Assembly: GCA_965649825.1 (NCBI GenBank)
Contig: OZ287722.1
Span: 1-46,000 of the forward strand
Origin: Penicillus capitatus
Taxonomy: Eukaryota > Plantae > Chlorophyta
Length of the DNA stretch: 46,000 bases
Reading direction: 5' to 3'
Part shown: one piece after another, positions 1 to 37,184 of the stretch
Position numbering within the stretch: the stretch's first letter is position 1
How the letters are laid out: every line of letters starts with the position of its first letter
The notes under the pieces: model-generated
Seen by the model: only the letters and a program-made list of their open reading frames with translations
Databases searched by the model: none
Told to the model about the DNA's origin: nothing
Made by a program: the position numbers and the translations under genes

Positions 1-919
1 GTTTGCATTCCCACGCCAGCGTCGAGAGCAAATCGTTCTTGTCCCTACCGTCCCGACCCGGATACTGCAGCTGTGCCAAACTCCACAGAAAGCGCGGCAC
101 ATCGTTGTTATTGAGACGCGATATCTTGATTTTCATCTCGTAGGTCACGGCCTCCATAATGCTTTCGACATTTGGGTACTGCATTCGAGCGAGGCCTTCG
201 ACGAAGACGGCCAGATCGATAGATCTCAGTTTAGAAATATCGCGCAAGAGACGTTGGATGATATCGCGAATCAGCGCATCCATGTTGTCGTGCAGGCTGA
301 GTGGCTGGACCAAGACCTTCGGTCCCAAAAAACTGATTCCCCATATCGCGTGGGTCAATTCCTCAGACGTGCATCGGAAGAGCTGTTTCCACAGCAGCTG
401 TCCAATCTTCTGCAGAACCTGCACAGCAGAAGCGACGTTCAATCGGCGGCCAGTCTGTGATATGGACACAGACGAGTTGCTGCGGTTTCTCGAACCACCA
501 GTCGCCCATGTATGCCACCGACTCCGCTCTGCCGATCCGGGCGAACATCGTGGCAGCATTGCGGCTCGTGATCGTGATTGGATTGTCATCGATGAGTTCG
601 ACGAAGTAACGCAGGAGACGAGAAACGGATTCTCCCCCTTCGGCAGACGACGGCTGGAGGCCTCTAAAACGTTTCACCAGTTTACTGCCTTCTTTGTTGA
701 TATTGTAGGAGTGTAACTCCCCTGGAGTCCTCTCTGTCATCTTGGTTCCCATGCAACGCAGGAGAAGACGCGCCTAAGACGAACGTGCGCTTCCGTTGAG
801 GAGATCGAGATCGAAACCTGCGATCCGATGGGTGGCGATACATGGAAGAGAGGCGAGGCGACGGGCGGCGTGACAGAGAGATGCGAGGCGATGGCTCGAC
901 GAAGGGCCTGACGGAACAT
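1..919 (-). CDS. FASTK/OPR-like helical-repeat organellar RNA-binding protein (3' end runs off the window)
   Basis: ATG 919; GT-AG introns 774-817 and 419-473 join three ORF pieces: MFRQALRRAIASH...SQ|ARLLLRCMGTK...QQL|VLQKIGQLLW. Arg-rich presequence-like N-terminus; repeats DLAVFVEGLARMQY and DVPRFLWSLAQLQY resemble FASTK/OPR helical repeats. Open to position 1. Confidence 0.7.
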
Positions 920-1067
920 GGCGTATCATTGCGTTTGCATTTGGCCTTTAATGAAAGGGACACACGCACGCCTTAGGCATCCGCGGTGCAGCTTCGACGC
1001 ATTTGGCTAGAGTATGACAGGAAGCGGCGGCTGGAGATGCACGAAAGAGCGAGGCAGACGTCGGCAG

Positions 1068-1997
1068 ATGCACATTGACAGCTCCCAGGTGTGGGCCAAT
1101 GTCGGTGATCCGTCAAGACGCGGTGTCGGATGCAGGTCGAGGAAGCTCTGAATCCGGTCCGCGGCGTGCGGGATGCATTGCGGCGACAAGGAATCGAGCC
1201 GCGAAACTATGCAAGGTGCAATCGAGAGGCGGTCAGACAGGCGAGTCAAAAGAACGCGATGAGACGAAAAGTGAGGCGACGACAGAAGCGTCTCGGATGA
1301 GCGTGCGCTGGTCTGTGGCGCCTTTTCAGCAATGCCTTATCGAAAGCGCCGCCGCGCGACCGAAAGAGCGACGTCGTTCAACAGCGCCACGACGCGAGAT
1401 CACGGCTGAGGATGCAAGGAATAGTCACGTTCTGCGCAATATCCTGGAAGCGAGTGCCAAGAGCAAGACGGATGTCGGGGACAGGAACCGCCCTTTGAGC
1501 CCTCGATGGCTTCACAAAGAGGGATACGGAGAGGTGCGTGACGCTCCGATCGATCGGCCGATACGTCGCACGCGCTCACGATCTGCGTCGTCCAGGTGCC
1601 GAGCTACTTGCAGATGCGCAAAGTGGAGCTGGCAGCCGAACGCGATGCAAAAGAACGCGCTAGAGAAGCTGCGCTGTGCGCTCCAGGTCATCTCCAATGC
1701 ACTTCACCCCCGCCTTCGTGTCTAAGGAATCGAGTAAAGGTATGCGATTGATGGAGGATGGAGAGCAGAAAGAGGCACTGGAGAAAATTGTGCACAGTAA
1801 AGACAACGTGGAGACGCAGCTGCGCAATCTGCCGTTGATCATCGAGACGCCATCCCTTATGAAACTCAAAACAGAGTCCCCATCTCACACATCTCTCTGG
1901 CCTCACACTTTTCTACGACAGATTGGAACGGCGTCTGGTGGAGCTCGAAGAGGCCGAACGCATCTTCTCGAGGCCGCGCGTCATCGTTAAAGTCTGA
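1068..1997 (+). CDS. Enkurin-domain protein (ENKD1-like)
   Basis: Six exons joined by five GT-AG introns: MHIDSSQ|VEEALNPVRGVRDALRRQGIEPRNY...GYGE|VPSYLQMRK...APGMRLMEDGEQKEALEK...QLRNLPLIIETPSLMKLKTE|LERRLVELEEAERIFSRPRVIVKV*. The C-terminus matches the enkurin-domain pattern (LP-x-IETPS...FSRP-x-V). Start codon is uncertain (ATG 1014, 1068 or 1130). Confidence 0.8.
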
Positions 1998-3280
1998 TCG
2001 AGCGAGATGTCCGTATGGTGTCGTATTCAAATGTCCGTCCGTGTTTTCACACTTTTTATGATGACACAATTCAGAGAGTGTTATTGCTTTTGAGCATGTG
2101 GCTAAAGTCCCGTCAGTTTATGTGTGACATGATACCGGATTAGACATCTCGCTCAGGAAACAAGAAATCCGAACTCCCTTCAAATGAACGCCCTTCAATC
2201 TTTCATGCATTTGCCAAAATGATTGCTTGGGTAGAGAGCTGTGCAGTTATGTCTCTGCACAGATCATCATACTGTTCAACGCATGGATTATTCATCTCAA
2301 ACGACTAGGAGTGCGTCTACATTCCTGAATGATGACACAAGAGTGCCCACTTGTCAGTCATTCCCTTCTTCAGTTTCGACAAACAGAGCTGACGTGAAAT
2401 GATGATCGCGAAGTCGGTTGTCATGGGTGGTGAGGTAGGAGGATCACAGGAGCGAAGAGATCCGATGGATTAAATCTTAACAGCCTACGAAATCGTGAAA
2501 CCATCCTTCTATCCTTGATTGACAATACGTACGTATCCTTTCTTCGCCACAAAACGAATGATGGGAGAAAACCATCGGTCCAATCGATCAATCAATCGCC
2601 TGAAGTAAGTACTTTGTCCCAGACGACACGATGTGTCAATATTCTTTCTTTCTTTCTTTCTCTATTTGTCTCGAACGTGAATGGGTCGACTGGCATCGAA
2701 GTCATGCCTGATGGAGGACGGGCCCAAGGAGTCATGGGAAAAAGAGATGCGGAGAGCACACTTGACTTTCCATTGAGAGAAGAGCATAGCACACAGAATA
2801 GCACAGCGCCAGCCCAGCACATCGATCCCACACCAATGCAACGCAATACGCAGACACACGCGCGCTCAAATCGCTCACGCATTGGACACGCGAATGCAAA
2901 CCCACAGTACCACATGCAACGAGGTATACCAATGGACCTGAATCATACTTGCTGTTGCACTAGTCTACCGATCGAGAAGAAAAACCTCAAGAATTCTGCA
3001 CAGCTGTGAGTTTATGTACAGACCTGTCAAAAAGGATTTTAAGGAAAAGAATCCTAATACAACAGCCCTTCCGTACGTGGCTGCAAGAGACAATGTTCAT
3101 CGTTATCATTCTTCGTCTTCTTCTTTGTCTTTCCGCATGAAATTTATACATTGATTGGATGAACATGTAATCGAGTCGGTGGTGCGTCGTCCCACACGTT
3201 GACTGGAAAGTTAGGACTGATGCTCACTTGACTCGATTTGAATGTATGATCTCTTGCGTATTTTGCTTCTCTTATCCGAG

Positions 3281-4396
3281 TCAAGACAACTTCACTGGCT
3301 CTGCAAACACATCCATCCACACAGGCATTAGATAGCCATTGAGTGAGAGAAAGAGTGAGATGCCGTACTCGAAGTCGGCTTCTGACGAAGAGGTGGTGGT
3401 GCTCGATGCACTCTTGCTGTGTAGGTAGAGTGGCATTTCGAAGTTGTCAACAGCAAAGACTAACCCATCCGTCTCGCTAGCGTCTTTTTCAGGTGTTCTG
3501 GGGACTGGACTACGGTCAGAGTCTTCAACGTGACTGGATGATACGAACTGCGTCTGAAGATCGATGAAGGAACTGACTTTCATGGGCAGCGGCGAGTTGA
3601 AGTCTGAGAAAGAAGTCAGATGTCGAAATCGGCTCCAGTCATTCATTTCTGCAAAAGACAGTGTCTCGGCAGTGGTCGCCGTATCGGGCATAACAGATTC
3701 CCCTTGATTCGAGTCAAGTAGCACGGCAGCACCAATCACCTCCTCTTCCCCTTCGCTGGCCGCCGAAGCGGCCTCTTGTAATTTTGCATGCGATTCTTTG
3801 TTGAATACAGCCGAATCTGATGCAAGTCCGACGGCGACAGGCACTTGTGTTGTTGGATGCTGCTCTGCATGGACTTCTTCTTGTTCATGTGCTGCCATCA
3901 CCATCTCCTGACTTGCTCGTGCAGATTCGGATTCATTTTGCATCGCCTCCACGACCTCGCCACTGTGCAAGACGCTTCCAGTGCTATCATCAGCGAACTT
4001 GCGAGACGAGGGGGTCGACACTTCGTGGTCACTCGTGGTGCGATGCACAAAATCGTCCGCAGAGTCGATCGACCGGCTCGGTCCAGCGTCAGGGGTGTCC
4101 GTCGGTGACTGCATCATCAACGTCTGTATATTGGCGCGTTGACTTTTCTCGAGCGGAACCGGCACTTCCACTGGAAGAACGGCCGTCCGGCGAAACAACT
4201 CCGTCATCTTGTCCATTCGCTCTTCATACTTGCGCAGCCTCTCTCCCCTCAAAATAACAAGCCCCGAATTCTGTGACAGTGTTGCCTCCAGGTCGCGCAT
4301 TCCTTGTTCATCGAGCTCCTCTTCCGAGTACTCGAACGGTTCTGATTTTCGTTTCCGTCTGTTGGAACGTAAGAATCTTATAGGGAAGAGACCCAT
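3281..4396 (-). CDS. Uncharacterised acidic Ser/Glu-rich, largely disordered protein
   Basis: Single long open frame; first ATG at 4396 (MGLFPIRFLRSNRRKRKSEPF) with an in-frame stop upstream at 4463-4465. Basic NLS-like RRKRK, low-complexity body, hydrophobic C-terminal tail. No family recognised. Confidence 0.6.
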   Translation of the reverse strand: MGLFPIRFLRSNRRKRKSEPFEYSEEELDEQGMRDLEATLSQNSGLVILRGERLRKYEERMDKMTELFRRTAVLPVEVPVPLEKSQRANIQTLMMQSPTDTPDAGPSRSIDSADDFVHRTTSDHEVSTPSSRKFADDSTGSVLHSGEVVEAMQNESESARASQEMVMAAHEQEEVHAEQHPTTQVPVAVGLASDSAVFNKESHAKLQEAASAASEGEEEVIGAAVLLDSNQGESVMPDTATTAETLSFAEMNDWSRFRHLTSFSDFNSPLPMKVSSFIDLQTQFVSSSHVEDSDRSPVPRTPEKDASETDGLVFAVDNFEMPLYLHSKSASSTTTSSSEADFEYGISLFLSLNGYLMPVWMDVFAEPVKLS

Positions 4397-4800
4397 GTCT
4401 GTGTTTATTATGTCACGGTCAGAAGGCAATTTGAAAACAAACGATACGCCTTTCTTGGTGATTCAAAGGACGACAGGTCGACAACTGCGAAAGAAATAGG
4501 CCTTGATTCTCTCAGGCAAGCAATTTGAACGTGGAGCGTTTTTCAAGTGGAGCGCGCGTTGATGATGATGATGCGCAGCCGTCGTTAGCATGCATACCGT
4601 CAGCACTACGACAGCGGATGGTCACCGTCATGCCAAGCCAATCGATCCAACCAACCACGAGCTCCTAACCGACGACCCCGACTTAAGGAGCCAGCGCCCG
4701 CCATTCCTCACCACCTCGACGACCTCGGCCAAAACATTTTGAGGATCGTTCGCCTCTCGAGAGTCGTTTTAGCGAGTGCATCGAAATTGGTCACGCGGTA

Positions 4801-6206
4801 ATGCGAAAAGGAGTTTGCGCTCTATTCTGCTCATTAACTGTGGGACTCGTTGCCATCTTGTTTAGGTCTTCGCTTAGGTCTGCATCAGAGACGCCGGTGT
4901 CGAACAAGATGCGCAAAATACTCGTTACGGGAGGCGTTGGCTTCATCGGTAGGTCCCATCTGTCGTGCCGTAACACTGACGGCTGTGATGACAGGGAGTC
5001 ATACATCGGTGGAGCTCGTGGAGTCGGGATACAACGTCACGATCATTGACAACCTGCAGAATTCGTTTTTGGACGCTTTTGAGCGTATGAAGGAACTCGT
5101 GGGCGACAAGGCTGAGTTTTTGAAATTCAAAAAGGCGCGTGTTAAACGGCGCATTGCTTTATCTGTGATGTGACTGACAGGTTTGTTTAGGTGGATCTCA
5201 AAGATCTCGCAGCGCTGGATGCTGTCTTTTCAGAAGAAAAGTGACGACGGCTACTGTGGCGGCGTGTGATGCGAGCGTGATGTGACGTTTAGATTTGATG
5301 CTGTTGTGCACTTTGCTGCGATGAAAGCGGTGGGCGAGAGCATGGAGTTTCCCATGCTCTACTACAAGAACAATGCCATTGGCACTATCAACCTCTTGGA
5401 CGCGATGGGCCGACACGGATGCAAAACAGTAACACCGATCACTTCTTTGCTGACAGTACAGAGAACTGTGTGATCGTTGTGTGACCAGTTGGTGTTTTCG
5501 AGTTCCTGTACGGTCTACGGAAATCCCAAGGAAGTCCCTATCACCGAAGACCATCCGCGATCGGCGATTAGCGTTTACGGACGGACAAAGCTGTTCAACG
5601 AAGATATGATGATGGATCTCTCTACTGCAGACAAAGAATGGAAGATCATTCTACTGAGGTGACGCGGATCGACTGTCTCTCTGTCGCATAGAGTGTTGCG
5701 AGGTGTTTAGGTACTTCAATCCCGTCTCTGCCCATCCTTCCGGTCGAATCGGCGAGCATCCGATCGGCATTCCGACGAATCTGATGCCATTCGTTCAGCA
5801 AGTCGCCGTCGGTCTCCGTCCCGAGCTCAAAGTCTTTGGGGATGACTACGAGACGCGTGATGGGACGTGCATTCGAGACTACATCCATGTGATGGATCTC
5901 GCCACCTCACACGTGGCCGCCTTGCAGAAGGTCATCGAGACGGAGAACTATGGCTGCCAGGCGGTGAATGTGGGAACTGGCAAAGGGACGACGGTCCTGG
6001 AGATGATCCATGCCTTCGAAGAGGCCAGTGGAAAGAAGATTCCCTTTACCGTGGTCGGCAGACGTGCCGGAGATTCGATTGCCGTCTGGGCAGCAACGGA
6101 CCGTGCCGAGAAGGAACTGGGCTGGAAGGCAAAGTTTGACATTAAGGACATGTGCCGCGATCAGTGGAAATGGGCCACTCAAAATCCCAAGGGATACGAA
6201 AACTGA
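4801..6206 (+). CDS. GALE: UDP-glucose 4-epimerase
   Basis: [11 protein letters not shown]|GSH NAD-binding motif, [25 protein letters not shown], catalytic [31 protein letters not shown]. Five introns, one GC-AG (5135-5190). In-frame ATGs at 4801 and about 4908. Confidence 0.97.
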
Positions 6207-6226
6207 CTTGTTTCCTGGATGCTGCT

Positions 6227-7378
6227 TCATTTCTGAAACTGCTCTTCCTTGTTGTCTTCTGTCCTTCGATGTTTAAGCCATGCCTTCAACTGCCGATCGA
6301 TGCGCTGTGCCTCCTCAGTTTCGACGGCGTTTTGCTGAGAGCCTTCGACGCCTAATCGATCGATCTCGCTCAATTCCTCGTGCAGTGTCTGCATCGTCCT
6401 CATCTCACTCTAAGACATATGACCACTGCACCATCGCAAAGAGAAGAGACGTTGTCGACAGATGATGAGAGGAGTAAAGGATGAACGATGTTCTTCAGAT
6501 AGGACTCCAGTCGTTTCTTGTTGCTCTTGTACCCGGATCGCACAGCCGCCAGCGCCAATGTACCTGGAAAAGTGAGAGAAGAGTGACTTCGTACACAAGG
6601 GCATCTCATCGCACTTGGCGCGAAGAGCAAAGGAGCATCGGTCTCCAAGAGACACTGCGCTGCGACGTAAGCCGATTTTCGCACGGCCGAGAGATCGTCG
6701 ACATCTTCCAATCCCACTCTGTCGTGCTCGCCATTTCGCATTCGCCGAGCAATGTCCTGCACAAACGAACACGCGCATCGTGCCTTGCACACGTGTGAGA
6801 ACAGTGCCCCACTTCCATGAAGCCATCGATATCTCTAAAAGGCGTGTGGACGATGAGATCGTACTGCAGCGACTTGACCAATCGCAGCTCACTCTTCCTC
6901 AACTGATGCTCCGTCAGAGAGGGAAACGCATGAACGAGATTGTCGATCGTGAGGTATTCCTCTTCGATTTTGGACGCCACGTAGATGCATGCCATAAAGA
7001 GTTTGCTGGGATCCTGATTCATCACACTATTATCAATGTAGAATCTCTTCAGAAACATCATGGCTGTCGATTGGACACGCAGAGAGTAACTCTGCTGTTG
7101 GCAAAATGCCAGAATACTCTTCTCATAATACCGCAGTAACAGCCGCTCCTCTTCTTGCGTCACAGGGGGGTCTGTTCACGACGACTTGACGTCTGATGAT
7201 GGAAATAGGCAGCTGAACCTGCGAGGCTGTCCATCAGAGCAGCACTGCGCGAAGCGGCCCGTCGTTGTTCCTGTAAAGATATTATGTTCCAAGTAAAGAG
7301 AGAAGTCGGCACTACTAGCTGGTCCTTCTTAAACGTCCATCGTGCGCGTTGAGACGATGACGCGAAGTTCATTTCCAC
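6227..7378 (-). CDS. CCNH: Cyclin H
   Basis: MEMNFASSSQRARWTF N-terminus; cyclin box EEERLLLRYYE...STAMMFLKRFYIDNSVMNQDP...CIYVASKIEE; QYDLIVHTPFR; last exon ...QRIDRQLKAW...QFQK* with stop at 6227-6229. Confidence 0.9.
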
Positions 7379-7562
7379 GCACGCAATGGTGATGATGATC
7401 CGGGCGTTACGCCACCGACCACCGATCGGAGCGTCGCTGCGACAATCTTCCTCTCGATTTCGGCCACATCCACGCCGCTCTGTGGCAATACGCGCCCAGA
7501 TGCCACGTCAGTGAACGCAAGGACATTGCTCTGTGCGACACTGAAGAATAGGAGCGGCAAAG

Positions 7563-8482
7563 ATGGCGCAGAATAAAGTACTGCAGATCTGGAGAACGGC
7601 TCAAGCTGTTTGCTTCGACGTGGACAGCACACTGTATGCCACAAACACCTCGACACTCTTTAAAGGACACGATTGCATGGACAGGATCCAGGAAGAGAGC
7701 ATCGACGAGTTGGCCGATTTCTTGGGCATGGGCGAACGCATTGCTCAGCTAACGGAGCGGTAGAGTGGTGCTTGTGTCCACACAGTGCCAGATATGATTT
7801 CTGTCCAGGGCTATGAACGGGAAGATGAGATTTGAGGAGGCGTTGAAAGAGAGACTCGATGCCATGCAGCCATCTGCATCAGACGTGGAACGATTCTTGC
7901 AGCAACGTCCTCCCAGAATAACGCAAGGCATCCCTGAACTCGTCTCTGCATTGCACGGGCGTCAAATTGCAGTGTATCTCATTTCTGGCGGATTCCGAGA
8001 TATCATTGGTCCGATAGCAGACAAGCTGGAAATCGATCGCAGCCACGTCTATGCTAACACCATCTGCTTTCATGTACCTCACAGTATTTGTCTCACTTTT
8101 GCTCACTCTTTCGGTTTGTAGGAAGATGGGAGCTATGCAGGATTTGATGCAACGGAGTTCACCTCTCGTAGCGGAGGCAAAGCAGCTGCCGTGCAGTCTA
8201 TTAAGGTCACTCTTCTCACACAAGGCATCTTTCATAGATACGCTTCCTCTAGGACACCCACGCACATCGCCCCATGGTCATGATCGGCGACGGGGCTACC
8301 GATCTGGAAGCGCGCAGCCAAGGCGCCGTAGATCTCTTTATCGGGTAATCGCCTTTTCGTTTACTCGAATGGCTCATCGGTCATGGATTAGGTATGGAGG
8401 GGTCGTTGAGCGTCCTGTGATCGTGGATCAGGCGGATTGGTTCGTCAGAGACATTGGCGTTCTGCTAGATGCTTTAGATTGA
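7563..8482 (+). CDS. PSP: Phosphoserine phosphatase (HAD family)
   Basis: AVCFDVDSTL|IQEESIDELADFLG (HAD motif I DxDST), YLISGGF (motif II), FTSRSGGK, MIGDGATDLEAR (motif IV), LFIG|YGGVVER. Five GT-AG introns; stop TGA 8480-8482. Confidence 0.95.
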
Positions 8483-8507
8483 AGGCAAAAGCAATCCCTT
8501 CCTTTCT

Positions 8508-10612
8508 ATGCGATTCCTCACTCGACTGCGCGTTCTTCTGAGACAGGGTCTTCAGAATTGGCTCATCGAGTCCTACGCGACGCATGGCGTCACTCAGCGA
8601 CGTCCCTTTGCGGTTCCGCACCTCGTCGAGGATGCGGCGTGGACAGAGGACCTTCAGTTGAGATCCTTGTCGATACCGACTTCCTGTCGGAGTGCACCGC
8701 TGCGTCCCTTTTCATCTCCTTATCGTTTATTCACGACAAAGAGCGACGATTCCGAATCATCTGATGAACCTCCAACGATACGCGACGATTCGGATGCGTC
8801 TGATGAACCTCCATCGCCTGCTTCTCTCCCCAGCGACGATGAATGGACTGTCTTTGACGACGGCAATGCACAAGTGTCCTCTTTCAGATCTGTGACGCTG
8901 TTTGGAATGCAAGGGTCGTTTAGGAAGATGCAGAAGAGCCGCCTTCTTTTGCGAAAGTGCAATCTCTACAGAGAGAAGCGTGGGACACTTTGAGCAAAGA
9001 GCGATCGCATTTGTCGAAGGCAGTGCAAGAGCAATACCGAAAGGCATTCATGTCGGCTACCGTGTACTTCCGAGTGCATTATCGAGATCTCACACTTCTG
9101 GAAGTGTGTGACATGATCGCGCATTTCTCAGGCCTTGTTCCTGGACCTAAAGGACGCCTCTGGGCAGCTAGACAATGCAATGAGACGCTGCTGCACCTTG
9201 TTCAGATGTGGTACGAGAAACTCAGCAACGCCGAATCGATCGATCCCGGCACTTTCTCGCAGACGATTCGAGTCATCGGCCGATTCGGCAAACCTTTTCA
9301 GCAGCATTGCGCCAAGGCCGATCCAGATAATAGTTTATGGAAACTTGCTGATCTAGCCACATCTCTGGTGCCTTCCGCGACTCCCGAAATGATCGTTTCG
9401 ATGCTCGACGGATTTGCAAAGCTTCGCGTGTTCCGAGACAGATTCCTGGCAGAAGTGACGCTGTATACGGAGCTCAACATTGAGAGCTTCGCTCCGTGGA
9501 ATCTGATTGATCTGTTGGACGCATATCGGCGACTGAGGTATGAAAAAACGACCCGATTAATGGGCAAGATTTCACATGCCATTATACCTCGTGTGCATGA
9601 ACTGTCGCCGGATCGCTTGGCAAGACTGCTCTGGATCATCTCATCTTTTCGCTGGAAACACACGACAGAACTGAACGATGCACTGCTAAAGGTATGACGC
9701 GTGTGATGTCACTCATCGAATGCGATCTGTCTTCAGGAGAGCATGCACAGAATTGCAGACTTCTCACGAAATGCCATGATCCTTTTGGCAAACCACCTAG
9801 CAGCGACATATCACTATCCGGGCGATGTCTTTGTCCATACCGTATGTCGAGATTTCGTCAAAAGATACCATCTTTTTAACCACACACCTATCGCTATACG
9901 GTACCTGGTGGCATTGGCAAAGCTTGGATGCCGGGATGAGGAGGCCATTCATTTCGCCAGAAACATCGTCATGAATGCTCCTTTGACACTCAAACATGTC
10001 CTGCTGGTTGGATGGTCCCTCAGCATACTGGACGCTTTTAATGAAGAGGCCACCAAATGGTGGATCCAGAGAGTTGGGCAGGCCAACTATTTAAACACCA
10101 CGCTTATCGAAAAACGTTACTTCTATCAAACCCTGTTGCATATCTATGTGTTTCGGCCTGATCTTGGCCGACTGCTGGATGTGGATCCCGAATTCGAGGA
10201 GGTCTGTCTGGAGTCGTGGAGACAGCGCGTGAAAGAGAAAGCCTATACTTCTCATGGCGTGCTGCAGATTATGACAACCCTCAGAGAACTGGGATTCTAC
10301 TGCTTTCGATCGCACTTTACCTTTGGCCGTCGTCTGAACATCAGCATCTTTTTTCACAGAAGATACACGATTCAGATCGGCATTTTCGCCGAAGAGGGTT
10401 TTGCCAACAACCGTCAGCGACTGAAGGGTCCGCAGATCTGGAAGCGACAGTTGTTGGAGAAGATGAATTGGACGCTGCTGAAAGTGCCGATTCTGGAATG
10501 GGAGAACCTCAACAGTCGCGTCGAGAAGCGGGAGTACCTCAGGAAGAAAATCGTAGAGATCATGTCGAAACGCATCGCCATGGCAAAAGGTATCCGGCCA
10601 GAAGCCAATTGA
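8508..10612 (+). CDS. RAP-domain/FASTK-like helical-repeat RNA-binding protein with organelle-targeting-like N-terminus
   Basis: Three exons (introns after NAQ and LLK). Arg/Leu-rich N-terminus MRFLTRLRVLLRQ; repeats MIVSMLDGFAKL, NLIDLLDAYRRL, RLARLLWIISSF; RAP-like C-terminus GPQIWKRQLLEKMNWTLLKVPILEWENL. Confidence 0.8.
8745..8813 (+). repeat. Imperfect coding tandem duplication (30-nt unit, 39-nt period)
   Basis: gacgattccgaatcatctgatgaacctcca (8745) and gacgattcggatgcgtctgatgaacctcca (8784) encode DDSESSDEPP and DDSDASDEPP. Confidence 0.75.
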
Positions 10613-10643
10613 GCGTAAAGGACTGATATTACAGAGGGCTATC

Positions 10644-12695
10644 CTACTCCTGACGCGGTTTCGACCTATACTTCAATTCTCCAATTAATGTCCAGGCAGT
10701 TAGAGCAATCCACCCGATATTGACAGGCGACAAGACCACACTGAACATGCCATAGTATGCCTCAGTCATGATCATAGAACGCCCGAAGGAGGCCATGGAA
10801 AAGAGACCCAAGAGGATGTAAACGACGAGGGCTTTGTATTTCTTGCAAACAGATTTTGATGTGTCTTTCCAACGCTGAAGTGTCCATACCATCCAGACGG
10901 TTGCGGGCAGAACAACGGTGATGTAGAACTGACAGGCGCGGAAAGGCATCTCGGGACTGTGAACGGCGACGAGATCTGAAGAGGCGGGCTGGATATGAAT
11001 GGTCGGGACAAAGACAATGCCGAGCGAGTTATCGGACAGCACACGCGCAGCATACCAGGGACCAAACAGCAAGAGCAACGAATAGCACAGCTGACCCCAC
11101 CAGAAGACAGGAAACTGTGTCGCTGTCTTGAATGCCAAGAAAGGAGATTGGAAGTAACGCATCCATCTCATCCCCGAGTTCGAATTCCGTCTGTTCCTTG
11201 TCTCTTCCGGAGTGGCGTCTCGTGCCGTGTCGATCTGCACAAGAGCGATGCCTTTTGGCAGAAGCAGGAGCAGGAAGATGTGCATCATGATCAGCAAGAC
11301 GAAGAAATTCTGAAAGACGGAGCACCACGAGTATTTCAAGATTAGGGACGTCGGGAATTCTTGCGGATACGGTTTTGGCTTGGTCCTCGGCTCCAGCGGC
11401 CGCCTCTCAGAGAGCGCTATGCGATTGGATGCATCGAACCGGACACGAACCTGCACAGAGGGAGTGCGATCGCCGCACAGTGATCGAAAGAGCGTTTCGT
11501 TCAGCTGCGACTCGAACACTGGCCCTCCATTCACGGCGGCCAACTTCTCCACCGTGTGCGCCGCTACAGCATCGTCTCCGCAGTAGATCAGCGCATCAGC
11601 ATGCAGGTCTTTGGAAGGAACTGTCACATCATCTCTTTGCCAGACAATGACTCGTAGCGACGACAGTGACGACGCCGTTCCAGTATTCCCCAGAGGAGCA
11701 AAGTGTGGATTCGGTGGAGATGTGATCAGCACCACAGCTGCCTCTATGCGCATGGCTGCATCCAGAGGTCGGATGATAGCCGGCTGCGATGCCTTCTCCA
11801 TTTCGAAGTCTGCAAAAGAGAGATGGCCATCATCGATGGCCACGATGCGGAATCTCCTTCTTATCTTCCAATCTGTCGTCTCCAGCTCCAACAGCGTCGA
11901 AGCATCGCCCTCGTGCGATCGGTGCAGATGATTACCGAATGCATCGTGCAGATGGCCACAGAACCACGCCGCCACTCCATACTTCCAGAGCACTCTCTTC
12001 AGTTCCACTTGATTTCCGACAAAATAACGCGCCTCCTTTCCGACGGTGCTCATCGGATAATGCCCGTACGCTATGTAAAGAGGACGACAGTTATTGCCAT
12101 ACCACTTTCGCATGTCGGTCACAATCTCGATCTCCAGCTCGTTCAGAATCTCCTCCGTCATCATGCCAAAAAAATTCGTGGGGCTGCGCAGTCCAATATC
12201 GGGAACGAGATCGATACCGACGAGACAGTAGACCGGACAGGCAGTCGATGCAAAGAAGGGATGTATGAGGATACGTCTCGACGCCCATGCCTCGCCCATC
12301 ACTGCAGAGGTTCGATAGGAGTCTCCTTCTCCGTTCCGTTTCCCGGTGTCAAAAACATCGTGATTGCCGCGGATGTCGATAAAAGTGGATGATGTGTTGC
12401 CCATCGCAGGGCGTGCCATTTGGACCATTTCTCTGTACTGTGTCCATTCCTTGGGCCGCTGTTGCGATCTACTGCTGTATGGGACCTTGGCATGGACGAG
12501 ATCTCCCGTAATCAGAACGGCGGAAAAATCGAAAAGGGGGAAGAACTGCTGAAACAGAATGCTCAAATCCGCCGCCCTGCCTTCAGCGACCTCGCTGAAA
12601 TGCAAGTCCGAAAGGTGCAGAAACCACGAGACCTCCGCCTGTGCCACTCTGGGGGTCCAACAAAGCAGGACGGAGCATAGGATAAGGGCAAGCAT
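10644..12695 (-). CDS. TMEM62-like calcineurin-type metallophosphoesterase with C-terminal transmembrane region
   Basis: 683-aa uninterrupted ORF. Signal peptide MLALILCSVLLC; metallophosphoesterase motifs LSDLH, TGDLV, RGNHD, YGHYP, CGHLH, then LELETTDWK; several hydrophobic segments after residue about 460. Confidence 0.85.
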   Translation of the reverse strand: MLALILCSVLLCWTPRVAQAEVSWFLHLSDLHFSEVAEGRAADLSILFQQFFPLFDFSAVLITGDLVHAKVPYSSRSQQRPKEWTQYREMVQMARPAMGNTSSTFIDIRGNHDVFDTGKRNGEGDSYRTSAVMGEAWASRRILIHPFFASTACPVYCLVGIDLVPDIGLRSPTNFFGMMTEEILNELEIEIVTDMRKWYGNNCRPLYIAYGHYPMSTVGKEARYFVGNQVELKRVLWKYGVAAWFCGHLHDAFGNHLHRSHEGDASTLLELETTDWKIRRRFRIVAIDDGHLSFADFEMEKASQPAIIRPLDAAMRIEAAVVLITSPPNPHFAPLGNTGTASSLSSLRVIVWQRDDVTVPSKDLHADALIYCGDDAVAAHTVEKLAAVNGGPVFESQLNETLFRSLCGDRTPSVQVRVRFDASNRIALSERRPLEPRTKPKPYPQEFPTSLILKYSWCSVFQNFFVLLIMMHIFLLLLLPKGIALVQIDTARDATPEETRNRRNSNSGMRWMRYFQSPFLAFKTATQFPVFWWGQLCYSLLLLFGPWYAARVLSDNSLGIVFVPTIHIQPASSDLVAVHSPEMPFRACQFYITVVLPATVWMVWTLQRWKDTSKSVCKKYKALVVYILLGLFSMASFGRSMIMTEAYYGMFSVVLSPVNIGWIALTAWTLIGELKYRSKPRQE

Positions 12696-12737
12696 GCGAA
12701 ACGTCCGAAGGGAAAGTTGGCTGATCGAAATACGGTC

Positions 12738-15491
12738 ATGATATACGGTTACCTGTCGATGCTAACGACGAGGAAGGGAGCTTGTCTGACGATGCGGCGT
12801 CGACTACACCGTCTTCGGCATCTGCACCAATATCCAGGACGAAAGGGAAAGACAGAAAGATCCGTTTCACTGCCTCGACGTATAAACACCGCCTCTTCGG
12901 GCAAAATTGGGAGCAGTCGAGAAGTCAAAGGAGGATCTCGCCCTTCCGTGTCCATACGAGAATCTTCTGTTGCGGAATGGATTCAGCAGACAGTGATCTC
13001 TGTACGCAAAGTGATGCATGAAGTGCTGACTTGGTGCCGGATTCTGATGCCGTGGATCTTGGTACCATGTCTCACTCTTTTGATGCGGCCATCTCGCGGA
13101 CACGGATATCTCACTCCTAACCTCTCACAGCATTATTCGCATGTCACCTTTGCCAGCGCTTCGAAGTCGATCGCAGATTCCAAGATCACCTGGGTTGACA
13201 TTCTGCAGTATAAGTTTCAAAAGGTCCGGACGAGAGGTGTCTTCTAGCGAGAGATATGCGATTCCGGCTGTTTCGGGTTCAGGTCATGTCGAAGCAGATG
13301 TTTGGCAAACTGTGTGCCGTGCTGTTGGCAGCAGCGCCGATCGTCGTTGTCGGTGGTCTGTGTCTCAAATTGGCCTCCGGAGATCGACTACAACACTCCA
13401 TGTTCAAAGCCTTCACCATCATGGGCGACGTACCAGGCACGTCCATCCCTACCTCACTTCCTTATCCGTCCAATGTCGTTACATGTCAGGAGCCGATGCT
13501 GTGCAGGACGACAGTCCACATGTCCTGTTCATCGGCAATCTGATCTTTTTCGCTGGGATGTTCACTGTGGCGGTGACATTGGGAATCGTCTGCGATGACA
13601 TCAGCAACTTCGTCTCAGATGTGCGGCATGGAAACTACCAGATGGTGGAAGACGGACATACCGTCATCCTCAATGTCAACCGCCTGCTCGGTCCTGTCCT
13701 GCACCAAGTGACACCCTTGTTGTTCGATACGTCTGTCGACGAGAGAGGAACTGTGGATCAAAGTAGATCGAAGCGGCCTCCAAAGAACGTCGGCATTTCT
13801 CCGGACCCATCGTCATCTTGGCCGATATGGACAAGGAGGAGCTCGAAAGATTCGTCGCCGAGAAAGCGGAAGGCCTCAAACTCGAAATCTCCACACGCCG
13901 AGGATGCACACACGATGCCATGGATCTCAAGAGAGTCGCAGCTGGCAAAGCACAGTGCGTGATCTGGTTGGAACCTGAAGACGACGAGGTCTCAGTGGCA
14001 GCGAGGAGAGCGTGCGCCATCGCAGCGTTGAAAGCTCTCGGCTCGGGCAGCAGCAAGACTGCCAGAATGATCGTCCAGACATCGCACGATTCCTCTAAAT
14101 CTCTCTACCAACTGACTGACGTGCCCATGGCTTATCGGACACCGCCGCTGATGCAGGAGAGTAAATTGGATGTTATGGAACTGTGTGAGGAAGAGAACTT
14201 CGATCGACTGCTGGCGCAATGTGCCTTGCAGCCTGGACTGAGCGTCCTTTTTTCGGAAATCTTTCAGCACAATGCGGGGAAAGAGTTCTACGTCACACCG
14301 AATGCAGAATTCGCGGGGCAGGTCTATTCCGAAGCACGGCGTCGATTTGACACAGGCGCTGTGTGTGGAATCTACACTCCGCCACTGGAGAGTCCCCACA
14401 GCGATGGGAGTGTGCTGCTCAATCCTCCAGAGGACACTGTCATGAAGAAGGATGACCGGCTTATTGTGCTATCCAGCGATCGAGAACACGCCAATTCACA
14501 AAAGAAATCCACACCGCACGCATCGTGGGTCAAAGATGTGACCCGAGAGTACACGCCCACCTGGTCACACAGTATTGTGGTTCTGTGCTTTGGAGATGAG
14601 GGCAGAGCCGACAGCGGCATCGTGCAAGCCATCAGCATGTTTGCTCCCAAGGGAACAAACGTAACTATCGTCGCTTGGTATGTGTCGCGGACGGTGTACA
14701 CAGAGAGAGTTGCTTAAATGGGATGTTTGTTTGTGCAGTTCTGCTCCTGAAACGGACGGGAAGAATGGAGACTGTCAGGTCTCATACATCGAGGGCAATC
14801 CGGCATCGTTTAATACGCTTCGCAAACTTCAGAAGCACGAGATCGATACCATCGTCCTGGCCGGACTCGAAGATCTTCCACCCAAACTCGCAGATGCTCA
14901 AGCAAGCATTCGTCTCCATCTTATAACGTCCTCAGATCTGTTGCGCAGCTAATTTCAAGTCTGATTCAGATTCAGGAATGGGCCGAAAAGATATGGGAAA
15001 ACAAGAGAGGGTTCAATGTCGTCAGTCCATTGAATTCCTCCGAGACAAAGAAATTGGCAGATCACCTCATCGAAGTCGGCAGGTCAATGTCGGTGCCGAT
15101 TGCACTCGACGTTTTGCTGCCTTCCGAACTTGCGAGTGGCCTTCTGGTCCAAGTAGCCGGGGCGCCGATCCTGAACTTGGTCTTCAAAGATCTCATCGGA
15201 GACAACGGAGTTGAACTGTATCTCAGAGACGCGGAAGATTTCCATCTAATCGGAAGAGGACCATTGAAAGCGCACGAGGTGTCTGATATGGTCCGGCAGC
15301 ACAGCGAGACATTTCTCGGGTGAGATCTCCCTCCGACGCCATCGCTATGTGACTCCTACTGCAGTATCATGCGAAAAGACAAGAGCTGCGAGATCGCTCC
15401 CGGAGCCATGGAAGAGCACGAGTATGAGGCAGGGGAACGAATTGTTGTACTGGCAGAGAATTTTGGACCGGAATCCGTTGCAGATGCGTGA
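12738..15491 (+). CDS. CASTOR/POLLUX-like cation channel (PEC-like) with N-terminal transit-peptide-like extension
   Basis: TM helices flank a pore segment (FKAFTIMGDVPG|ADA...GMFTVAVTLGIV); VRHGNYQMVEDGHTVILN; RCK-like EISTRRG and YIEGNP; ADAQ|LISSLIQ; C-terminal ERIVVLAE. Six introns, two GC-AG. Start could be ATG 12738, 12759 or 12792. Confidence 0.85.
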
Positions 15492-15808
15492 ACGATGTGA
15501 CCAGGAATACGCTTTCGTATCGGAGTTGCATAATATAACTGGCCTTTTGTATGTGACAACGTCTCAGTCGCTGTCCGTGCTGCTGCATGAAAGCGTCGCT
15601 GTCCAATGGACTAGGCCTTTGTTGATGACATCGGACTCTTCCAGCCATCACGTGCCTGCTTCGTCGCGTCGATGGTCGAGCGCATCGAATCTGTCATAGG
15701 ACGCGTACTGACGCAGTAGATAAGCCAGCGCTGTACGACGAGAGCGGCACGAATGGGTGACGTGACCCTCTCGGAGTTGTGTATCAGACCATGGTGTCTT
15801 CGTACCGT

Positions 15809-16057
15809 ATGAATCTCTCCTTCCTTTTTGTCTTCCTCTGCCTCAGCGCTGTTGTGGCGCTCCGCCGGATAACGGAAGAAACTTATGGGTTTGTCGGCGT
15901 CAACTGTCAGCAAATGGTCGGTTGTGCATCGCAAAGATACGTGTCCAGTGATTCGTACTTTTCACAGGGAGAATTTTGTGAAAATGATGCCGAGTGTTGC
16001 AAGCATCATTGCGCAAGCCCCGAGGGCGGTCTCAGCTTCAACATCTGCCTCGACTGA
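15809..16057 (+). CDS. Small secreted cysteine-rich peptide, knottin (ICK)-like
   Basis: Signal peptide MNLSFLFVFLCLSAVVA. Removing a predicted 51-nt GT-AG intron (15917-15967) gives a 65-aa precursor ending CQQMGEFCENDAECCKHHCASPEGGLSFNICLD (C-x6-C-x5-CC-x3-C-x11-C). Confidence 0.65.
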   Translation: MNLSFLFVFLCLSAVVALRRITEETYGFVGVNCQQMVGCASQRYVSSDSYFSQGEFCENDAECCKHHCASPEGGLSFNICLD

Positions 16058-16335
16058 AAATCATCTCCATCCCTTGGACTGAGAATCCCATTTGCCAGTG
16101 AGTGGTACGAAGAGAGAGACGTTCATGAACCACAATCCTCGCAGTTCTGCAGGAACAGTATTTTTTCAAATGTTCACGGTGTGTTGCGACACTGTCCCTG
16201 TTCCGACTCGAACAGCAAATACTAGTTTCGCCAATACCACACCGGTCGTAATGTCCCCGTCCACGTTCGACATTTTCGCGACGAGCGACGTCATGTGCCT
16301 CATTTGAGCCCATTCGCCTTCAGTCTATCTCCGTT

Positions 16336-17332
16336 ATGTCGACGTTGACCATCGGAACGTCGAAAAAGACCTTCCGACTGACGGATCTCGATGTATCCGT
16401 GCAAGAAACTCTGTCCGATGCTCTCGGCGAAGGGTGCCACCTACTGCCCGAAATCGAAGCCGATACCGAAGCGTTGCAGTTCCTAAACGGATTCTTGAGA
16501 CACGTCGACGTGCAAAGACGACTGGCCCTCGCCGAAGTCGAGCACGCGTCTTTGCTGAAAGAGGATTATCGACTTGAAGGTGCGTCTCTCGGTCGCTGAG
16601 ATCCCGGGTTCGACGTTTCTGTACCAGAGCTGCGACTTCAGGAGCAGCTGAAAGTCATTGGTGTGACGCGCGATGCATTGACAAGAGAAGCGCAGGCGAA
16701 TGTCGCCCTCGTGGCCCGGATCACAGAGAAGCTCCAGCTGCGTCAGCCGCATTTCAATCACGTTTGCTGCAAATGGACACAACTCTGTCTTCGACAACAC
16801 TCGGCAAACGAAAAAAGAGTAATCATCACACTTTCACTCGTCGACGCAACTGGATTCCGGTTACAGAAGTGTGTGAGTGATGTTACACGAGAAACAATGA
16901 AGATGGCGGAGCAGATGCGAATGGTAAAAGGGAAACTCGCCGCTGCTTGCGAAGCCCGTGCGAAGATGGTCTTGCCACAGGCGCAGTTACTTCCCGATGC
17001 CGAGAGCAAGATCGAACAATACAGGCAAGATGCACAAGAGTACAAAGCCGCCTTGGAGGAGAGGGGATTTGGCCACGAGGTAAGTATCATGCAGGACCTG
17101 TGCCGTCTTCGCACTTAACAGAAGACTGTAGATCTCGCACGAGGCGATCGTGGAGAAGGCAGAGCATCTGGATCGATACAGGGCCGAAATTGCGAGTCTG
17201 CACAAGGAGCTGCTGCCATACGATCGGCAACTGCCACGCAACATGGACACAGCCCGAGATCGATTGCGGGAAGTGCGAGAAGAGATGGAGCGTGTGACAT
17301 CCGCCATTCGTGAAAAGATGGTTACCGACTAG
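16336..17332 (+). CDS. HAUS1: HAUS augmin-like complex subunit 1 (AUG1)
   Basis: Coiled-coil protein with HAUS1-like pattern: LPEIEADTEALQFL...KEDYRLE|ELRLQEQL; C-terminal ISHEAIVEKAE...LLPYDRQLPRNMDTARDRL. Assignment is from remembered family pattern only. Confidence 0.6.
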
Positions 17333-17337
17333 CGCTG

Positions 17338-19062
17338 TCACGACGAGGCCGGAACTGTCGCACGTCTCCAACTGGGGACAGCTTTGTGCGGAACGTGTCG
17401 AATGAAAGCACTGGTGCAAGGCTTGGATGGCGAAGAAGGGTTCGAAGTGGCATCGCAACGTCGCCTCGAGGCATCTGTCGATTGAACGAGTCGCGCCGGA
17501 TCGCGCACCGCCTCTACGACCACCTTAGGGGAAGCACTGACGTATTTCGCGGGAAAGAGCGAGATTATTACTTGCTGTCGTAGCCGGTCGATGCGTTCTC
17601 TGCGTCTTAGCTCTGTCATCTGTCGCTCTCTTCTTCGCACGAGGCGTCTGTCCAGAATCTGTCGGTTGCGTTGTTTGACTCTCTCCCGCTTTGCTTCCGC
17701 AGAGAAGTGCGTGTGCACGTGTTGCGTTTTCTGTCGCCGTTGAATCATCTCGGCAGCTCTGCGTTCGGCCTCCTGTTCGAACGCCACTGCCGGCTGGCTC
17801 TTCTCATGGACGCTTGTCATACCTTCTTGCGTTCCCTGTAAGCACGGACGCTTTTCTTTTTTTCGAGCTGCGCCTCCCGTATCTTTCTTTCTTCCTCTTT
17901 CTGAGTCTCCATCTTTTTTTGCGCCGCCTTTTTCTTCTTTGCCGCTTCTTCGGCTTTCTCTGCCTGCCACGACTGAACAAGTTGCCGTTGTACCTCACGC
18001 CGAAGCCGAGATTCGTGATCCTTTTGCTTTTTCTCTCTATCCTCTTGTCGAAGATCTCTGTCTTCTTCCTCGGCCAAACAAAGGCATTCGTTCTTGGCTC
18101 TCTCTTTATCGTTGCGCCAGCGACGAATGGCGTCTTTCTTCCTTTCTGCCAGGTCGCAGAAGACGGAATGCCATCTTCCGTGACGGACAATTTCGTTTGG
18201 AGCGATGCCGATCAACTCTTGACGACACAGCTCTGTCGTCATTAAATAGTCACCCTTGCAAATGCCAAGCAGCCTATAGAGAACTGATTTCGGTACGAAG
18301 ACACGCGTCATCGTGCGACACTGTGCCTGAGATACTCTCGGTGATCCTCCTCTCGCCATCCGTCCGTTTCGCCGTGCTGTTCGAGATAGGCATCGTATTC
18401 GAGTACCTCGGGCAGCAACCCGCTTTCGTTCTGCTTTGCTCTACACAGACGCGAACGCTGGCGAGCTGTATTACCAGAAGATAACATACAGAGGTGTGTT
18501 TGTCGCTGGTTTAGACGTCGCTGAACCGTTCCACTGCGGGGTACTCATGCGTTCGATCATGAGTTCGAGGTCGCGGTCAAGAAGGGCTTCCTCGCGCTCG
18601 AGCATCTGTCGTTGTCGGATCTCTTTGTGGTGGAAGGCATAGATTTCGTTTTCGACGCTGGTCAACGCGTCGCGTAAGTCCTCCGCTGACTTGGCGTCCG
18701 TCTTCGTCTCTTCGAGCTTCAGAATTGACACATACATCCGTCAGCATGCAGCAGTTCTCTATGAGTTGTGTGACGACGAGAGAAGATAGGTCTTCTGTCC
18801 GTTTCCGGATGCGGCAAACGTCTTGCAGCAGAGCCCGTACGAAGGAGCGGCGTTCGAATTCGGCCGATGTCTGCTCGTCTGTAAACTGCTGCTCCACGCC
18901 GGCGTCTGAACAAGGTACGCGGGTGCAACGAAGCGAAGCTTCACGTTTGGTGTAAAGCTGAGCCGTTTTGAGCCATCGCTTCGTCTCCAAGCGTTTTGCA
19001 TTCTGTTCTTCGTCTGTCGTCATTGTCGTCAACGCGACACACTTGCTGTCAAAATATGACAT
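17338..19062 (-). CDS. CCDC112-like coiled-coil protein
   Basis: Spliced LLPEVLEYDAYLEQHGETDGWREEDHREYLR|LLGICKGDY; EIVRHGRWHSVFCDLAERKKDAIRRWR; K/E/R-rich coil; C-terminal VPHKAVPSWRR. One GC-AG intron (18274-18326). Confidence 0.7.
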
Positions 19063-20783: not shown

Positions 20784-21143
20784 TTACCATAAAAATTGAA
20801 CAAACAACTTAAAACGGTAATAAAGAGCAGTAAACAAATCAGATCCATAATTGTATTCGTTATTCCCAAGTCGTTCATACATGACTTTAGCTCTTTCATG
20901 GTAAACAAATGCTTCGTCGACTCTTCCCATCCTTTCCAGACCGATAGCGTAGCTCCGAACGCAATAAAGAAAGTCCGGATGATCCGCATCTCCGTGGAGA
21001 CGCTCGCACATCTCGAGAGCCCTCTTGTAGACGGGCAATGCTTTGTCGTAACTTCCCGTTTTTTTTTCTAGTCCAACGCCATAGTTACTGAATGCAGCTC
21101 TCTCTTCGAGTTGAAGGTTTCGAACGCGCAAATAGATCCATGC
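20784..21143 (-). pseudogene. Isolated kinesin-light-chain-type TPR fragment (about two repeats), probably a relic
   Basis: NYGVGLEKKTGSYDKALPVYKRALEMCERLHGDADHPDFLYCV / RSYAIGLERMGRVDEAFVYHERAKVMYERL. Begins after an AG acceptor; no in-frame ATG or partner exon found. Confidence 0.55.
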
Positions 21144-21362
21144 CTAAACACAAGTCATTGACCGTTCTTTTTCAATCTCTCATTCGACACTTTTAACGCT
21201 TGATTTATGCGTATCGGCCATTAGGAAAAGAGAACATGCAACAACACGCGGCAGTTCGTTCGATCCTCGAAGGGCGACCTTTCGTCGTTTTGAACTCTGT
21301 CCAGCGCAAGTTGTGCAAGAGATCAGGATCTCGAACGAAACGGGTAATGCCATTCACCAGAG

Positions 21363-21990: not shown

Positions 21991-22075
21991 ACGGAGAGAT
22001 GAGATGACTTTGCGATAACATTCGTCTCTATTTAACCGAGGAGACTGCTTTTGTTTTGACAGACAAAATTGGATT

Positions 22076-23059: not shown

Positions 23060-23169
23060 CCGTTACGTCATTTATCTAAACACATTTCCCATCAGCCTCG
23101 GCATCTCGCGATAAGGCAGGTCTACTACATCTTGCAAATCGTTGTCGCCTTCAAGTCGTGACTCTTAGA

Positions 23170-33962: not shown

Positions 33963-34033
33963 ACGTCACATCCTTGTTCGACAGCAAGGCCATTCATTGT
34001 CGAATTGCACTCGCCGTTCCGTTTTTGGTCGCG

Positions 34034-37158: not shown

Positions 37159-37184
37159 CGTCGCGAACGTACAAACACTTTGCT

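Follow-up and report, generated by a model that had tools for sequence, protein, structure and literature searches.

Anatomy and conservation of a closely spaced phosphoserine phosphatase and RAP-domain gene pair in a compact nuclear genome segment of the green alga Penicillus capitatus: overlapping transcription units or a dicistronic mRNA?

Closely spaced genes were examined in the first 46,000 nucleotides of contig OZ287722.1 (assembly GCA_965649825.1, forward strand) of the chlorophyte Penicillus capitatus, hereafter called the window. The focus is a gene for phosphoserine phosphatase (PSP) whose stop codon is followed after only 25 nt by the start codon of a same-strand gene for a RAP-domain protein (RAP1). 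The window is a gene-dense segment of eukaryotic nuclear DNA with a G+C content of about 52% and also carries a second gene pair of similar layout, here named X and RAP2, together with further genes of the green lineage such as Castor/Pollux, MOR1/XMAP215 and GH17. A preliminary description of this DNA had put forward the PSP-RAP1 locus as a candidate for bicistronic expression, with X-RAP2 as a recurrence of the same scheme. Gene finders based on codon usage and on periodic Markov models were crude, splitting MOR1 and fusing X with RAP2, and served as guides only; all gene boundaries cited below were verified by homology or by hand.

PSP is encoded on the forward strand and begins further upstream than had been supposed. 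The preliminary description had placed its start at 7563, which must be corrected to ATG 7386, the first codon of a transit-peptide exon (7386-7506) that is joined in phase to exon 2 by a 45-nt GT..AG intron (7507-7551). A BLASTP alignment to the homologue P0001 crosses the junction between exons 1 and 2 (PRRSVAIRAQMPRAAK against PRR-VACSAQSPRMTK), and ATG 7386 is kept in the related genomes L003 and L004. Exons 2 to 7 follow at 7552-7633, 7685-7759, 7809-8073, 8122-8205, 8253-8344 and 8392-8482, the last of these ending in the stop codon TGA (8480-8482). The spliced product of 269 aa is 68% identical to P0001 (267 aa) over 241 aa, is similar to phosphoserine phosphatase over its full length and contains HAD motif I (DxDxT) in the form DVDST; the Pfam match to HAD is weak when a single exon is searched. 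Homologues number 4829, with a top identity of 70% for a EukProt protein, and the best named relatives are those of the Bryopsidales Bryopsis (66%) and Ostreobium (64%). The C-terminus that precedes the TGA, ...ADWFVRDIGVLLDALD, is canonical, as in the relatives P0001-P0003.

The spacer between the two genes occupies positions 8483-8507 (aggcaaaagcaatcccttcctttct). Direct reading and the gene models bear out what had been reported of it, namely that PSP ends in TGA at 8482, that 25 nt separate this codon from ATG 8508, and that the intervening sequence contains neither ATG nor TGTAA and is not a multiple of 3 in length. It is identical to L003 at 22 of 25 bases and free of indels. Beyond the TGA the PSP frame stays open for 94 codons (8483-8764), overlapping RAP1 exon 1 in another frame; this extension has the worst coding score of the three frames (-27 nats) and is probably a product of chance or composition. 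Two mini upstream ORFs (open reading frames) lie within the last PSP exon ahead of the RAP1 ATG, the triplet series ATG-CTT-TAG (8469-8477) and an ORF of 8 codons (8394-8420), and since both of their ATGs are lost by synonymous changes in L003, neither is conserved.

RAP1 consists of exon 1 (8508-8873, forward strand), with 122 codons for a presequence-like N-terminus and an acidic low-complexity stretch, and of exons 2 and 3 (8924-9691 and 9737-10612), which end in TGA (10610-10612). Exon 1 is spliced in phase to exon 2 by a 50-nt GT..AG intron, and the product of 669 aa carries a C-terminal RAP domain (Pfam PF08373, 1.8e-9, 37.8 bits against a cut-off of 24.2). Neither FAST_1 nor FAST_2 was detected in RAP1 with Pfam; the ortholog in L005 has a faint FAST_1 match. 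An initial homology search with the full-length protein gave no match and a full HMMER scan then found 193 homologues, and neither the RAP1 protein nor the 36-nt sequence of the junction had a match in metagenome scans.

The position of the RAP1 start is central to any interpretation of the locus. ATG 8508 is the sole in-frame ATG of exon 1, with the frame closed upstream by TAG 8475-8477, and the mature coding sequence (CDS) has its next in-frame ATG 542 nt further on, at 9050. That exon 1 and this ATG are genuine is shown by indels relative to L003 (3, 3 and 39 nt) that are all in frame and by a divergence that follows codon position, with identities of 0.90/0.91/0.82 that leave the third position least conserved. 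The frame outscores the other five by 9-25 nats, and both the ATG, whose context is weak (T at -3, C at +4), and the in-frame stop upstream of it are conserved in L003. The start proposed in the preliminary description is thereby upheld. Were exon 1 instead a chance ORF and Met165 (ATG 9050) the true start, some 540 nt would be available for a promoter and an untranslated region (UTR), and this alternative can point to an absolute coding score for exon 1 near zero in the gene model and to ORF-style calls on the relatives that begin in exon 2. However, the transit-peptide exons of other window genes score just as low, and homologous N-terminal ORFs that encode a presequence and a DDEW motif occur in L003, L004, L005, L006 and L008. 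With the in-frame indels, the codon-position divergence and the conserved ATG in L003, a mis-assigned start is close to refuted and in our estimation scarcely credible. Intron 1 of RAP1 (8874-8923) is itself unusual in being 92% identical to L003 against an intron average of 79%, with conserved flanks (8834-8971 at 0.90 or more, near-neutral sites); if retained, it would end the ORF at 8993 and yield a product of 161 aa, and it may be a regulated or functional element.

Relatives of the locus were identified through the full HMMER scan with RAP1, and comprise L003, L004, L005, L006/L007 and L008, whose contigs retain introns and so are genomic. L003, a metagenome contig of 704 kb from ENA, is collinear with window positions 1-18981 at 85% nucleotide identity, and the others represent more distant species in which RAP1 is 35-46% identical. 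PSP directly precedes a same-strand RAP1 ortholog in all five relatives, the stop-to-ATG spacers measuring 25 (L003), 4 (L004), 27 (L005), 3 (L006/7) and 12 nt (L008), each of them ATG-free; across the six genomes including the window, RAP1 proteins are 35-81% identical. The pair persists in L005, in which the other neighbours differ. At the PSP loci of Bryopsis (L001) and Ostreobium (L002), no RAP1 homologue was found within 10 kb. These comparisons indicate that the tight PSP-RAP1 spacing has been conserved beyond chance, and it is not exceptional within this genome; conservation of the pair fits a functional unit. The spacers of L005 and L006/7 are divisible by three in length, and that of L005 also contains no in-frame stop, so that read-through there would fuse PSP and RAP1.

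Two further features of the junction emerged from the alignments. The PSP stop position drifts over the six genomes, producing C-terminal tails of 0-8 extra residues, and the RAP1 ATG is always found 25-33 nt from the conserved core of PSP; the spacing of stop and start codon as such therefore shows no evidence of having been selected. At near-neutral sites between 8392 and 8570, a stretch that begins with the last PSP exon and takes in the first 21 codons of RAP1, identity to L003 is 90% (69/77, p ~0.007), compared with a near-neutral background of 78% in the window (introns 78.7%, third codon positions 75-82%). This level is about that of the bidirectional start region between cyclin H and PSP. 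The elevated identity points to constraint beyond coding at the PSP-RAP1 junction, and the constrained element could be a promoter with a 5' end, the 3' end of PSP, or an element that couples the two genes.

To place the 25-nt spacer in context, it was set beside the distances between other neighbours in all orientations. Cyclin H lies upstream of PSP in divergent orientation (minus strand, start codon 7370-7372, conserved N-terminus MNFASSSQRARWTF with Cyclin_N downstream), and the two start codons are 13 nt apart in the window, 9 in L003 and 8 in L004. Either both 5' UTRs consist of a few bases, or the promoter and leader of each gene lie inside the coding exon of the other. The remaining head-to-head gaps are 72 nt for X and NDH2 and 125 nt for MOR1 and ArgD. 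In tail-to-tail orientation, GALE and cyclin H are separated by 20 nt, and RAP1 and a TMEM62-like gene by 31 nt (10613-10643), a gap that measures about 25 nt in L003 (~12080-12105), 13 nt in L004 (7641-7653) and 3 nt in L008 (5598-5600). The TMEM62-like gene (10644-12695, minus strand) is a single ORF of 683 aa with Metallophos and TMEM62_C domains. Tandem gaps in the window measure 25, 26 and 71 nt. Across the window and its relatives, all three orientations (tandem, divergent, convergent) thus include gaps of 3-31 nt; the tandem gaps are no shorter than the non-tandem ones, and ultra-short gaps are not a tandem speciality. The preliminary description had reasoned that the PSP-RAP1 spacer is too short to accommodate UTRs and a promoter and that the locus is hence bicistronic. 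That argument fails because neighbours unable to share an mRNA are just as close (13, 20 and 31 nt). Since these tiny gaps separate genes that could not share an mRNA, the lineage must in any case already make use of promoters embedded in neighbouring genes and of UTRs that overlap.

The pentamer TGTAA was considered as a marker of transcript 3' ends. It occurs near stop codons (-12 to +40) in 4 of 17 cases where 0.4 would be expected, one of the four overlapping the X stop, and on account of this enrichment is probably the poly(A) signal for a subset of genes; only about a quarter of the window genes have TGTAA near the stop. For the TMEM62-like gene, the minus-strand TGTAA at 10629-10633 is 10 nt past the stop (4-10 nt across species) and is conserved in the window, L003 and L004. 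In L004 the signal falls inside the 13-nt gap, which would put cleavage of the TMEM62-like transcript inside the RAP1 coding sequence. From the PSP stop to the end of RAP1, TGTAA is absent in the four genomes checked. Beyond the RAP1 stop, the window and L003 share a conserved TGTAA at a distance of about 200 nt, and L005 has one at 47 nt. An apparent depletion of TGTAA on the sense strand of genes (5 sense against 16 antisense) was rejected, as it is not significant after allowing for the impossible in-frame TAA. Upstream of the 11 start codons inspected, no shared promoter or initiator motif was found. A candidate spacer motif, GCAAAG or GGCAAAAG, which also precedes the internal PSP ATG at 7563, was likewise discarded; the window contains 55 copies of GCAAAG where about 22 would be expected, and the hexamer is common coding sequence. 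Spliced-leader trans-splicing was dismissed in view of the lack of an AG between the pyrimidine tract and the ATG, the lack of a tract at the second locus and the lack of strand-directional gene clusters.

At the second locus, on the minus strand, the upstream partner X (38405-38063, 38014-37845, 37790-37642, 37588-37518 and 37468-37185) encodes 338 aa. It matches no Pfam family; a single homologue was found, P0121 (347 aa), which has no RAP protein fused to it. X ends in ATG-TAA, and its stop TAA (37187-37185) together with the last codon forms TGTAA (37189-37185), from which a poly(A) site is predicted just before the RAP2 ATG, with cleavage at ~37175-37160. The 26-nt spacer (37159-37184, minus strand, AGCAAAGTGTTTGTACGTTCGCGACG) is ATG-free, and RAP2 follows from ATG 37158 (37158-37009, 36963-36643, 36589-35618, 35565-35347 and 35299-35108), encoding a FASTK-like protein of 617 aa with a presequence-like N-terminus. 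FAST_1 is detected at 32.4 bits (cut-off 27.4), and the RAP match is below threshold (12.9 bits, E = 0.11). The recurrence that had been noted at 37159-37184 therefore stands as regards layout, but the identification of the downstream gene as a RAP gene is weak, FAST_1 being the domain that exceeds its threshold. RAP1 resembles the FASTK/RAP family of organellar RNA-binding proteins (PMC5737537, PMC8190603) in its C-terminal RAP domain, preceding helical region and presequence-like N-terminus, and RAP2 does so in combining FAST_1 with a RAP-like C-terminus; RAP1, in which FAST_1 and FAST_2 were not detected, and RAP2, with its sub-threshold RAP match, may depart from the family in these respects. 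No similarity between RAP1 and RAP2 could be detected, and they are therefore not one inherited module.

Two additional loci bear on the distribution of these features. A methyltransferase gene and VPS29 form the third tight tandem pair, with an ATG-free spacer of 71 nt (33963-34033, forward strand) and no RAP gene; the methyltransferase stop (33960-33962) follows the usual C-terminus and the VPS29 ATG (34034) opens a canonical N-terminus. A third gene for a FAST-like helical-repeat protein occupies positions 1-917 of the minus strand, with its ATG near 917, a transit-peptide-like first exon and a 44-nt intron. It runs off the left edge of the window, its upstream neighbour is divergent, and its L003 homologue has faint FAST_1 and RAP matches.

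The anatomy of the PSP-RAP1 locus is thus confirmed and evolutionarily stable, and is compatible with bicistronic as well as with separate transcription. The explanation that we favor, at about even confidence, is that PSP and RAP1, and likewise X and RAP2, may be transcribed in this hyper-compact nuclear genome of a green alga as separate units that overlap. From the gene models, the spacers, their conservation and the equally small gaps in all orientations, all of which are observed, we infer where transcripts would start and end. The start site and core promoter of RAP1 would fall within the spacer or the final exon of PSP, leaving a very short leader, and the 3' end and poly(A) site of PSP would lie inside RAP1 exon 1. 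Each protein would have its own capped mRNA, and read-through RNAs over both genes could arise as by-products. With the signals of each gene buried in its neighbour, rearrangements between them would be selected against, and we propose that these buried signals are the reason why the block GALE / cyclin H / PSP / RAP1 / TMEM62-like has been kept together across the relatives. The 90% conservation of the junction is as expected for a promoter or 5' end.

The closest parallel to such an organization is the overlapping transcription of microsporidian and nucleomorph genomes. Williams et al., writing in PNAS in 2005 and cited in PMC6009652, reportedly described overlapping transcription in compacted eukaryotic genomes, in which tiny spacers push start sites and 3' ends into neighbouring genes. 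As in those genomes, spacers here range from a few bases to some tens in every orientation and gene order is frozen among relatives. Unlike them, this is a free nuclear green-algal genome with many introns of 45-56 nt and a gene-poor stretch (17.3-24.2 kb), and so lacks the uniform reduction of a parasite or endosymbiont genome, and the overlap of transcripts in this alga is deduced from sequence.

Several observations weigh against separate transcription units. No promoter or initiator motif was recognized upstream of the RAP1 or RAP2 ATG, and the want of a TGTAA for PSP as far as the end of RAP1 in four genomes is what a shared 3' end would predict, an argument tempered by the fact that most window genes also have no nearby TGTAA. 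All spacers are ATG-free in every species, the pair is kept in L005 despite the different other neighbours, and the extra conservation at the junction is equally predicted by a coupling element. In L004 and L006/7, where the spacer is 3-4 nt long, the layout recalls the apposition of stop and start codons reported for Auxenochlorella bicistrons (PMC11291117). The ATG-free spacers, the 3-4 nt spacers, the missing TGTAA after PSP and the persistence in L005 are none of them statistically compelling, and each is also expected from buried signals.

The principal rival is that PSP-RAP1 and X-RAP2 are transcribed as obligate dicistronic nuclear mRNAs on which the 40S subunit re-initiates at the RAP ATG 3-27 nt past the upstream stop, an arrangement that would result in low-level expression of an organellar RNA-binding factor; we consider this possible but doubtful. 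Its appeal lies in the same-strand orientation and the ATG-free spacers of 25 and 26 nt, in a pair conserved in five relatives including L005 with its differing flanks, in the absence of TGTAA between the PSP and RAP1 stops in four genomes together with its presence past the RAP1 stop in the window, L003 and L005, and in the weak context of the RAP1 ATG. Polycistronic nuclear mRNAs are established in green algae, as the preliminary description stated for Chlamydomonas and Chromochloris, and in Auxenochlorella the spacing between ORFs is very short or overlapping (PMC7896298, PMC11291117). The validated bicistrons of Chlamydomonas, Chromochloris and Auxenochlorella have inter-ORF gaps of 40-260 nt, more than 10 times shorter than other colinear gaps, and combine a short ORF1, whose start codon stands in a weak context, with a depletion of ATGs ahead of ORF2 (PMC7896298, PMC11291117). 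The second ORF is reached by leaky scanning, and re-initiation has been argued against (PMC11291117). The loci described here resemble these systems in having two complete same-strand ORFs, each with its own start and stop, around a very short ATG-free spacer, and in an ORF2 longer than ORF1; PSP-RAP1 shares with them the conservation of the pair among related algae. They are unlike them in that non-tandem gaps are equally short, rather than the tandem gap lying far below those of its neighbours, in that ORF1 is long (810 nt for PSP, 1017 nt for X), and in that the second locus has TGTAA at the upstream stop; they are also known from genomic sequence. Nor is ORF1 depleted in ATG or weak in context. 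The PSP CDS contains 19 ATG triplets where 12 are expected and that of X 28 where 15 are expected, and a purine is present at -3 in both, with G at -3 and G at +4 for ATG 7386 of PSP and A at -3 for X, as judged by the general purine rule, from which the consensus of this species may differ. Because it is ATG-rich and has a purine at -3, ORF1 at both loci is not built for the passage of ribosomes.

For a dicistronic mRNA, ORF1 of 269 or 338 codons rich in ATG makes leaky scanning impossible here. In this respect the preference of the preliminary description for re-initiation over leaky scanning was sound, but re-initiation is without precedent in the validated loci, and after ORFs of 269 or 338 codons would be a new mechanism among them. 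As a general matter, re-initiation after long ORFs is very inefficient (argued also in PMC11291117). The spacing is unexceptional beside the divergent and convergent neighbours, TGTAA lies on the upstream stop codon of the second locus, the PSP stop drifts with no conserved stop-to-start distance, and the pair is absent in Bryopsis and Ostreobium. By the rules of nonsense-mediated decay in plants, such an mRNA should be marked for decay by the two RAP1 introns that are spliced beyond the PSP stop. To our knowledge, the known cases of termination-reinitiation need either a very short ORF1 or an upstream element complementary to 18S rRNA. The termination upstream ribosome-binding site (TURBS) systems of caliciviruses and influenza B, and re-initiation after short upstream ORFs, are similar in that stop and restart codons lie within 3-27 nt, and dissimilar in that the last 90 nt of PSP lack the TGGGA core, which occurs once before the X stop, no better than chance. 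The fuller proposal, in which dicistronic mRNAs have been kept for long in the lineage and the RAP cistron is translated by termination-dependent re-initiation after an ATG-rich ORF of 270-340 codons, seems to us improbable. A dedicated coupling of organellar RAP/OPR factors, with RAP genes enriched downstream of ultra-short tandem gaps, appears more improbable still. A FAST/RAP-type gene is indeed downstream in two of the three window tandem gaps below 100 nt, but with 3 of about 22 window genes FAST/RAP-like, the chance probability of two in three is about 0.05, and post hoc. The coupling scheme that the preliminary description suggested is further undercut by the same layout in the RAP-free methyltransferase-VPS29 pair, by the divergent neighbour of the third gene for a FAST-like protein, by the dissimilarity of RAP1 and RAP2 and by the unrelated upstream partners PSP and X. 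Finally, a cryptic short intron could remove the upstream stop and spacer, and so fuse PSP to RAP1 or X to RAP2 in one alternatively spliced gene. In-frame GT..AG candidates exist at 8440-8491 (52 nt) and 37188-37139 (50 nt, donor GTAAAG), the latter chosen by the dynamic-programming gene finder. They score like random GT..AG decoys, however, ranking in the lowest 2% and 6% when set among 51 real introns, with acceptors AAG and GAG in place of YAG, and chance would supply each junction with about 0.8 such in-frame pairs. L003 has AC in place of the acceptor AG (8490-8491), the PSP C-terminus that would be lost is conserved, and the homologues P0001 of PSP and P0121 of X are not fused to a RAP protein, which together make fusion highly unlikely.

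The remainder of the window shows that compaction is not even along the sequence. Introns are spliceosomal, and nearly all of the 57 modelled are 45-56 nt long, with a weak GT donor and a YAG acceptor. Their lengths are strikingly uniform and the donor consensus is almost nil beyond GT, which suggests that introns are recognized by length. Larger gaps (230-850 nt) and one gene-poor stretch of about 7 kb (17333-24240) occur, and the genome is therefore patchy and not uniformly minimal. The gene-poor stretch has a low-GC core (43% at 19-21 kb) and contains weak TPR-type ORFs only (minus strand, ~21985-22680), with no repeats, tRNAs or Rfam matches; scans of the whole window for Rfam families, tRNAs and tandem repeats were likewise empty. 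Two segments with no confident gene model, 2040-3280 and 4397-4700, are 94% and 96% identical to L003, compared with 83-90% for most coding regions and 79% for introns. The first has many small indels relative to L003 that are not multiples of three, and it has no Rfam match. These segments could represent a conserved non-coding RNA, a regulatory block or an unrecognized gene.

Either outcome, separate or dicistronic transcription, puts the locus within a known kind of system. If PSP and RAP1 were co-transcribed and RAP1 translated second, nuclear polycistrony would be extended to another green-algal lineage, and a re-initiation mechanism unseen in the validated loci would be needed. If they are separately transcribed, the window would provide a clean case of a free-living algal nuclear genome packed like those of nucleomorphs and microsporidia, with divergent starts 8-13 nt and convergent stops 3-31 nt apart, in which packing appears to freeze gene order. 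For the annotation of such genomes the lesson is that a short stop-to-start distance is no evidence of polycistrony unless it is set against the distances between non-tandem neighbours.

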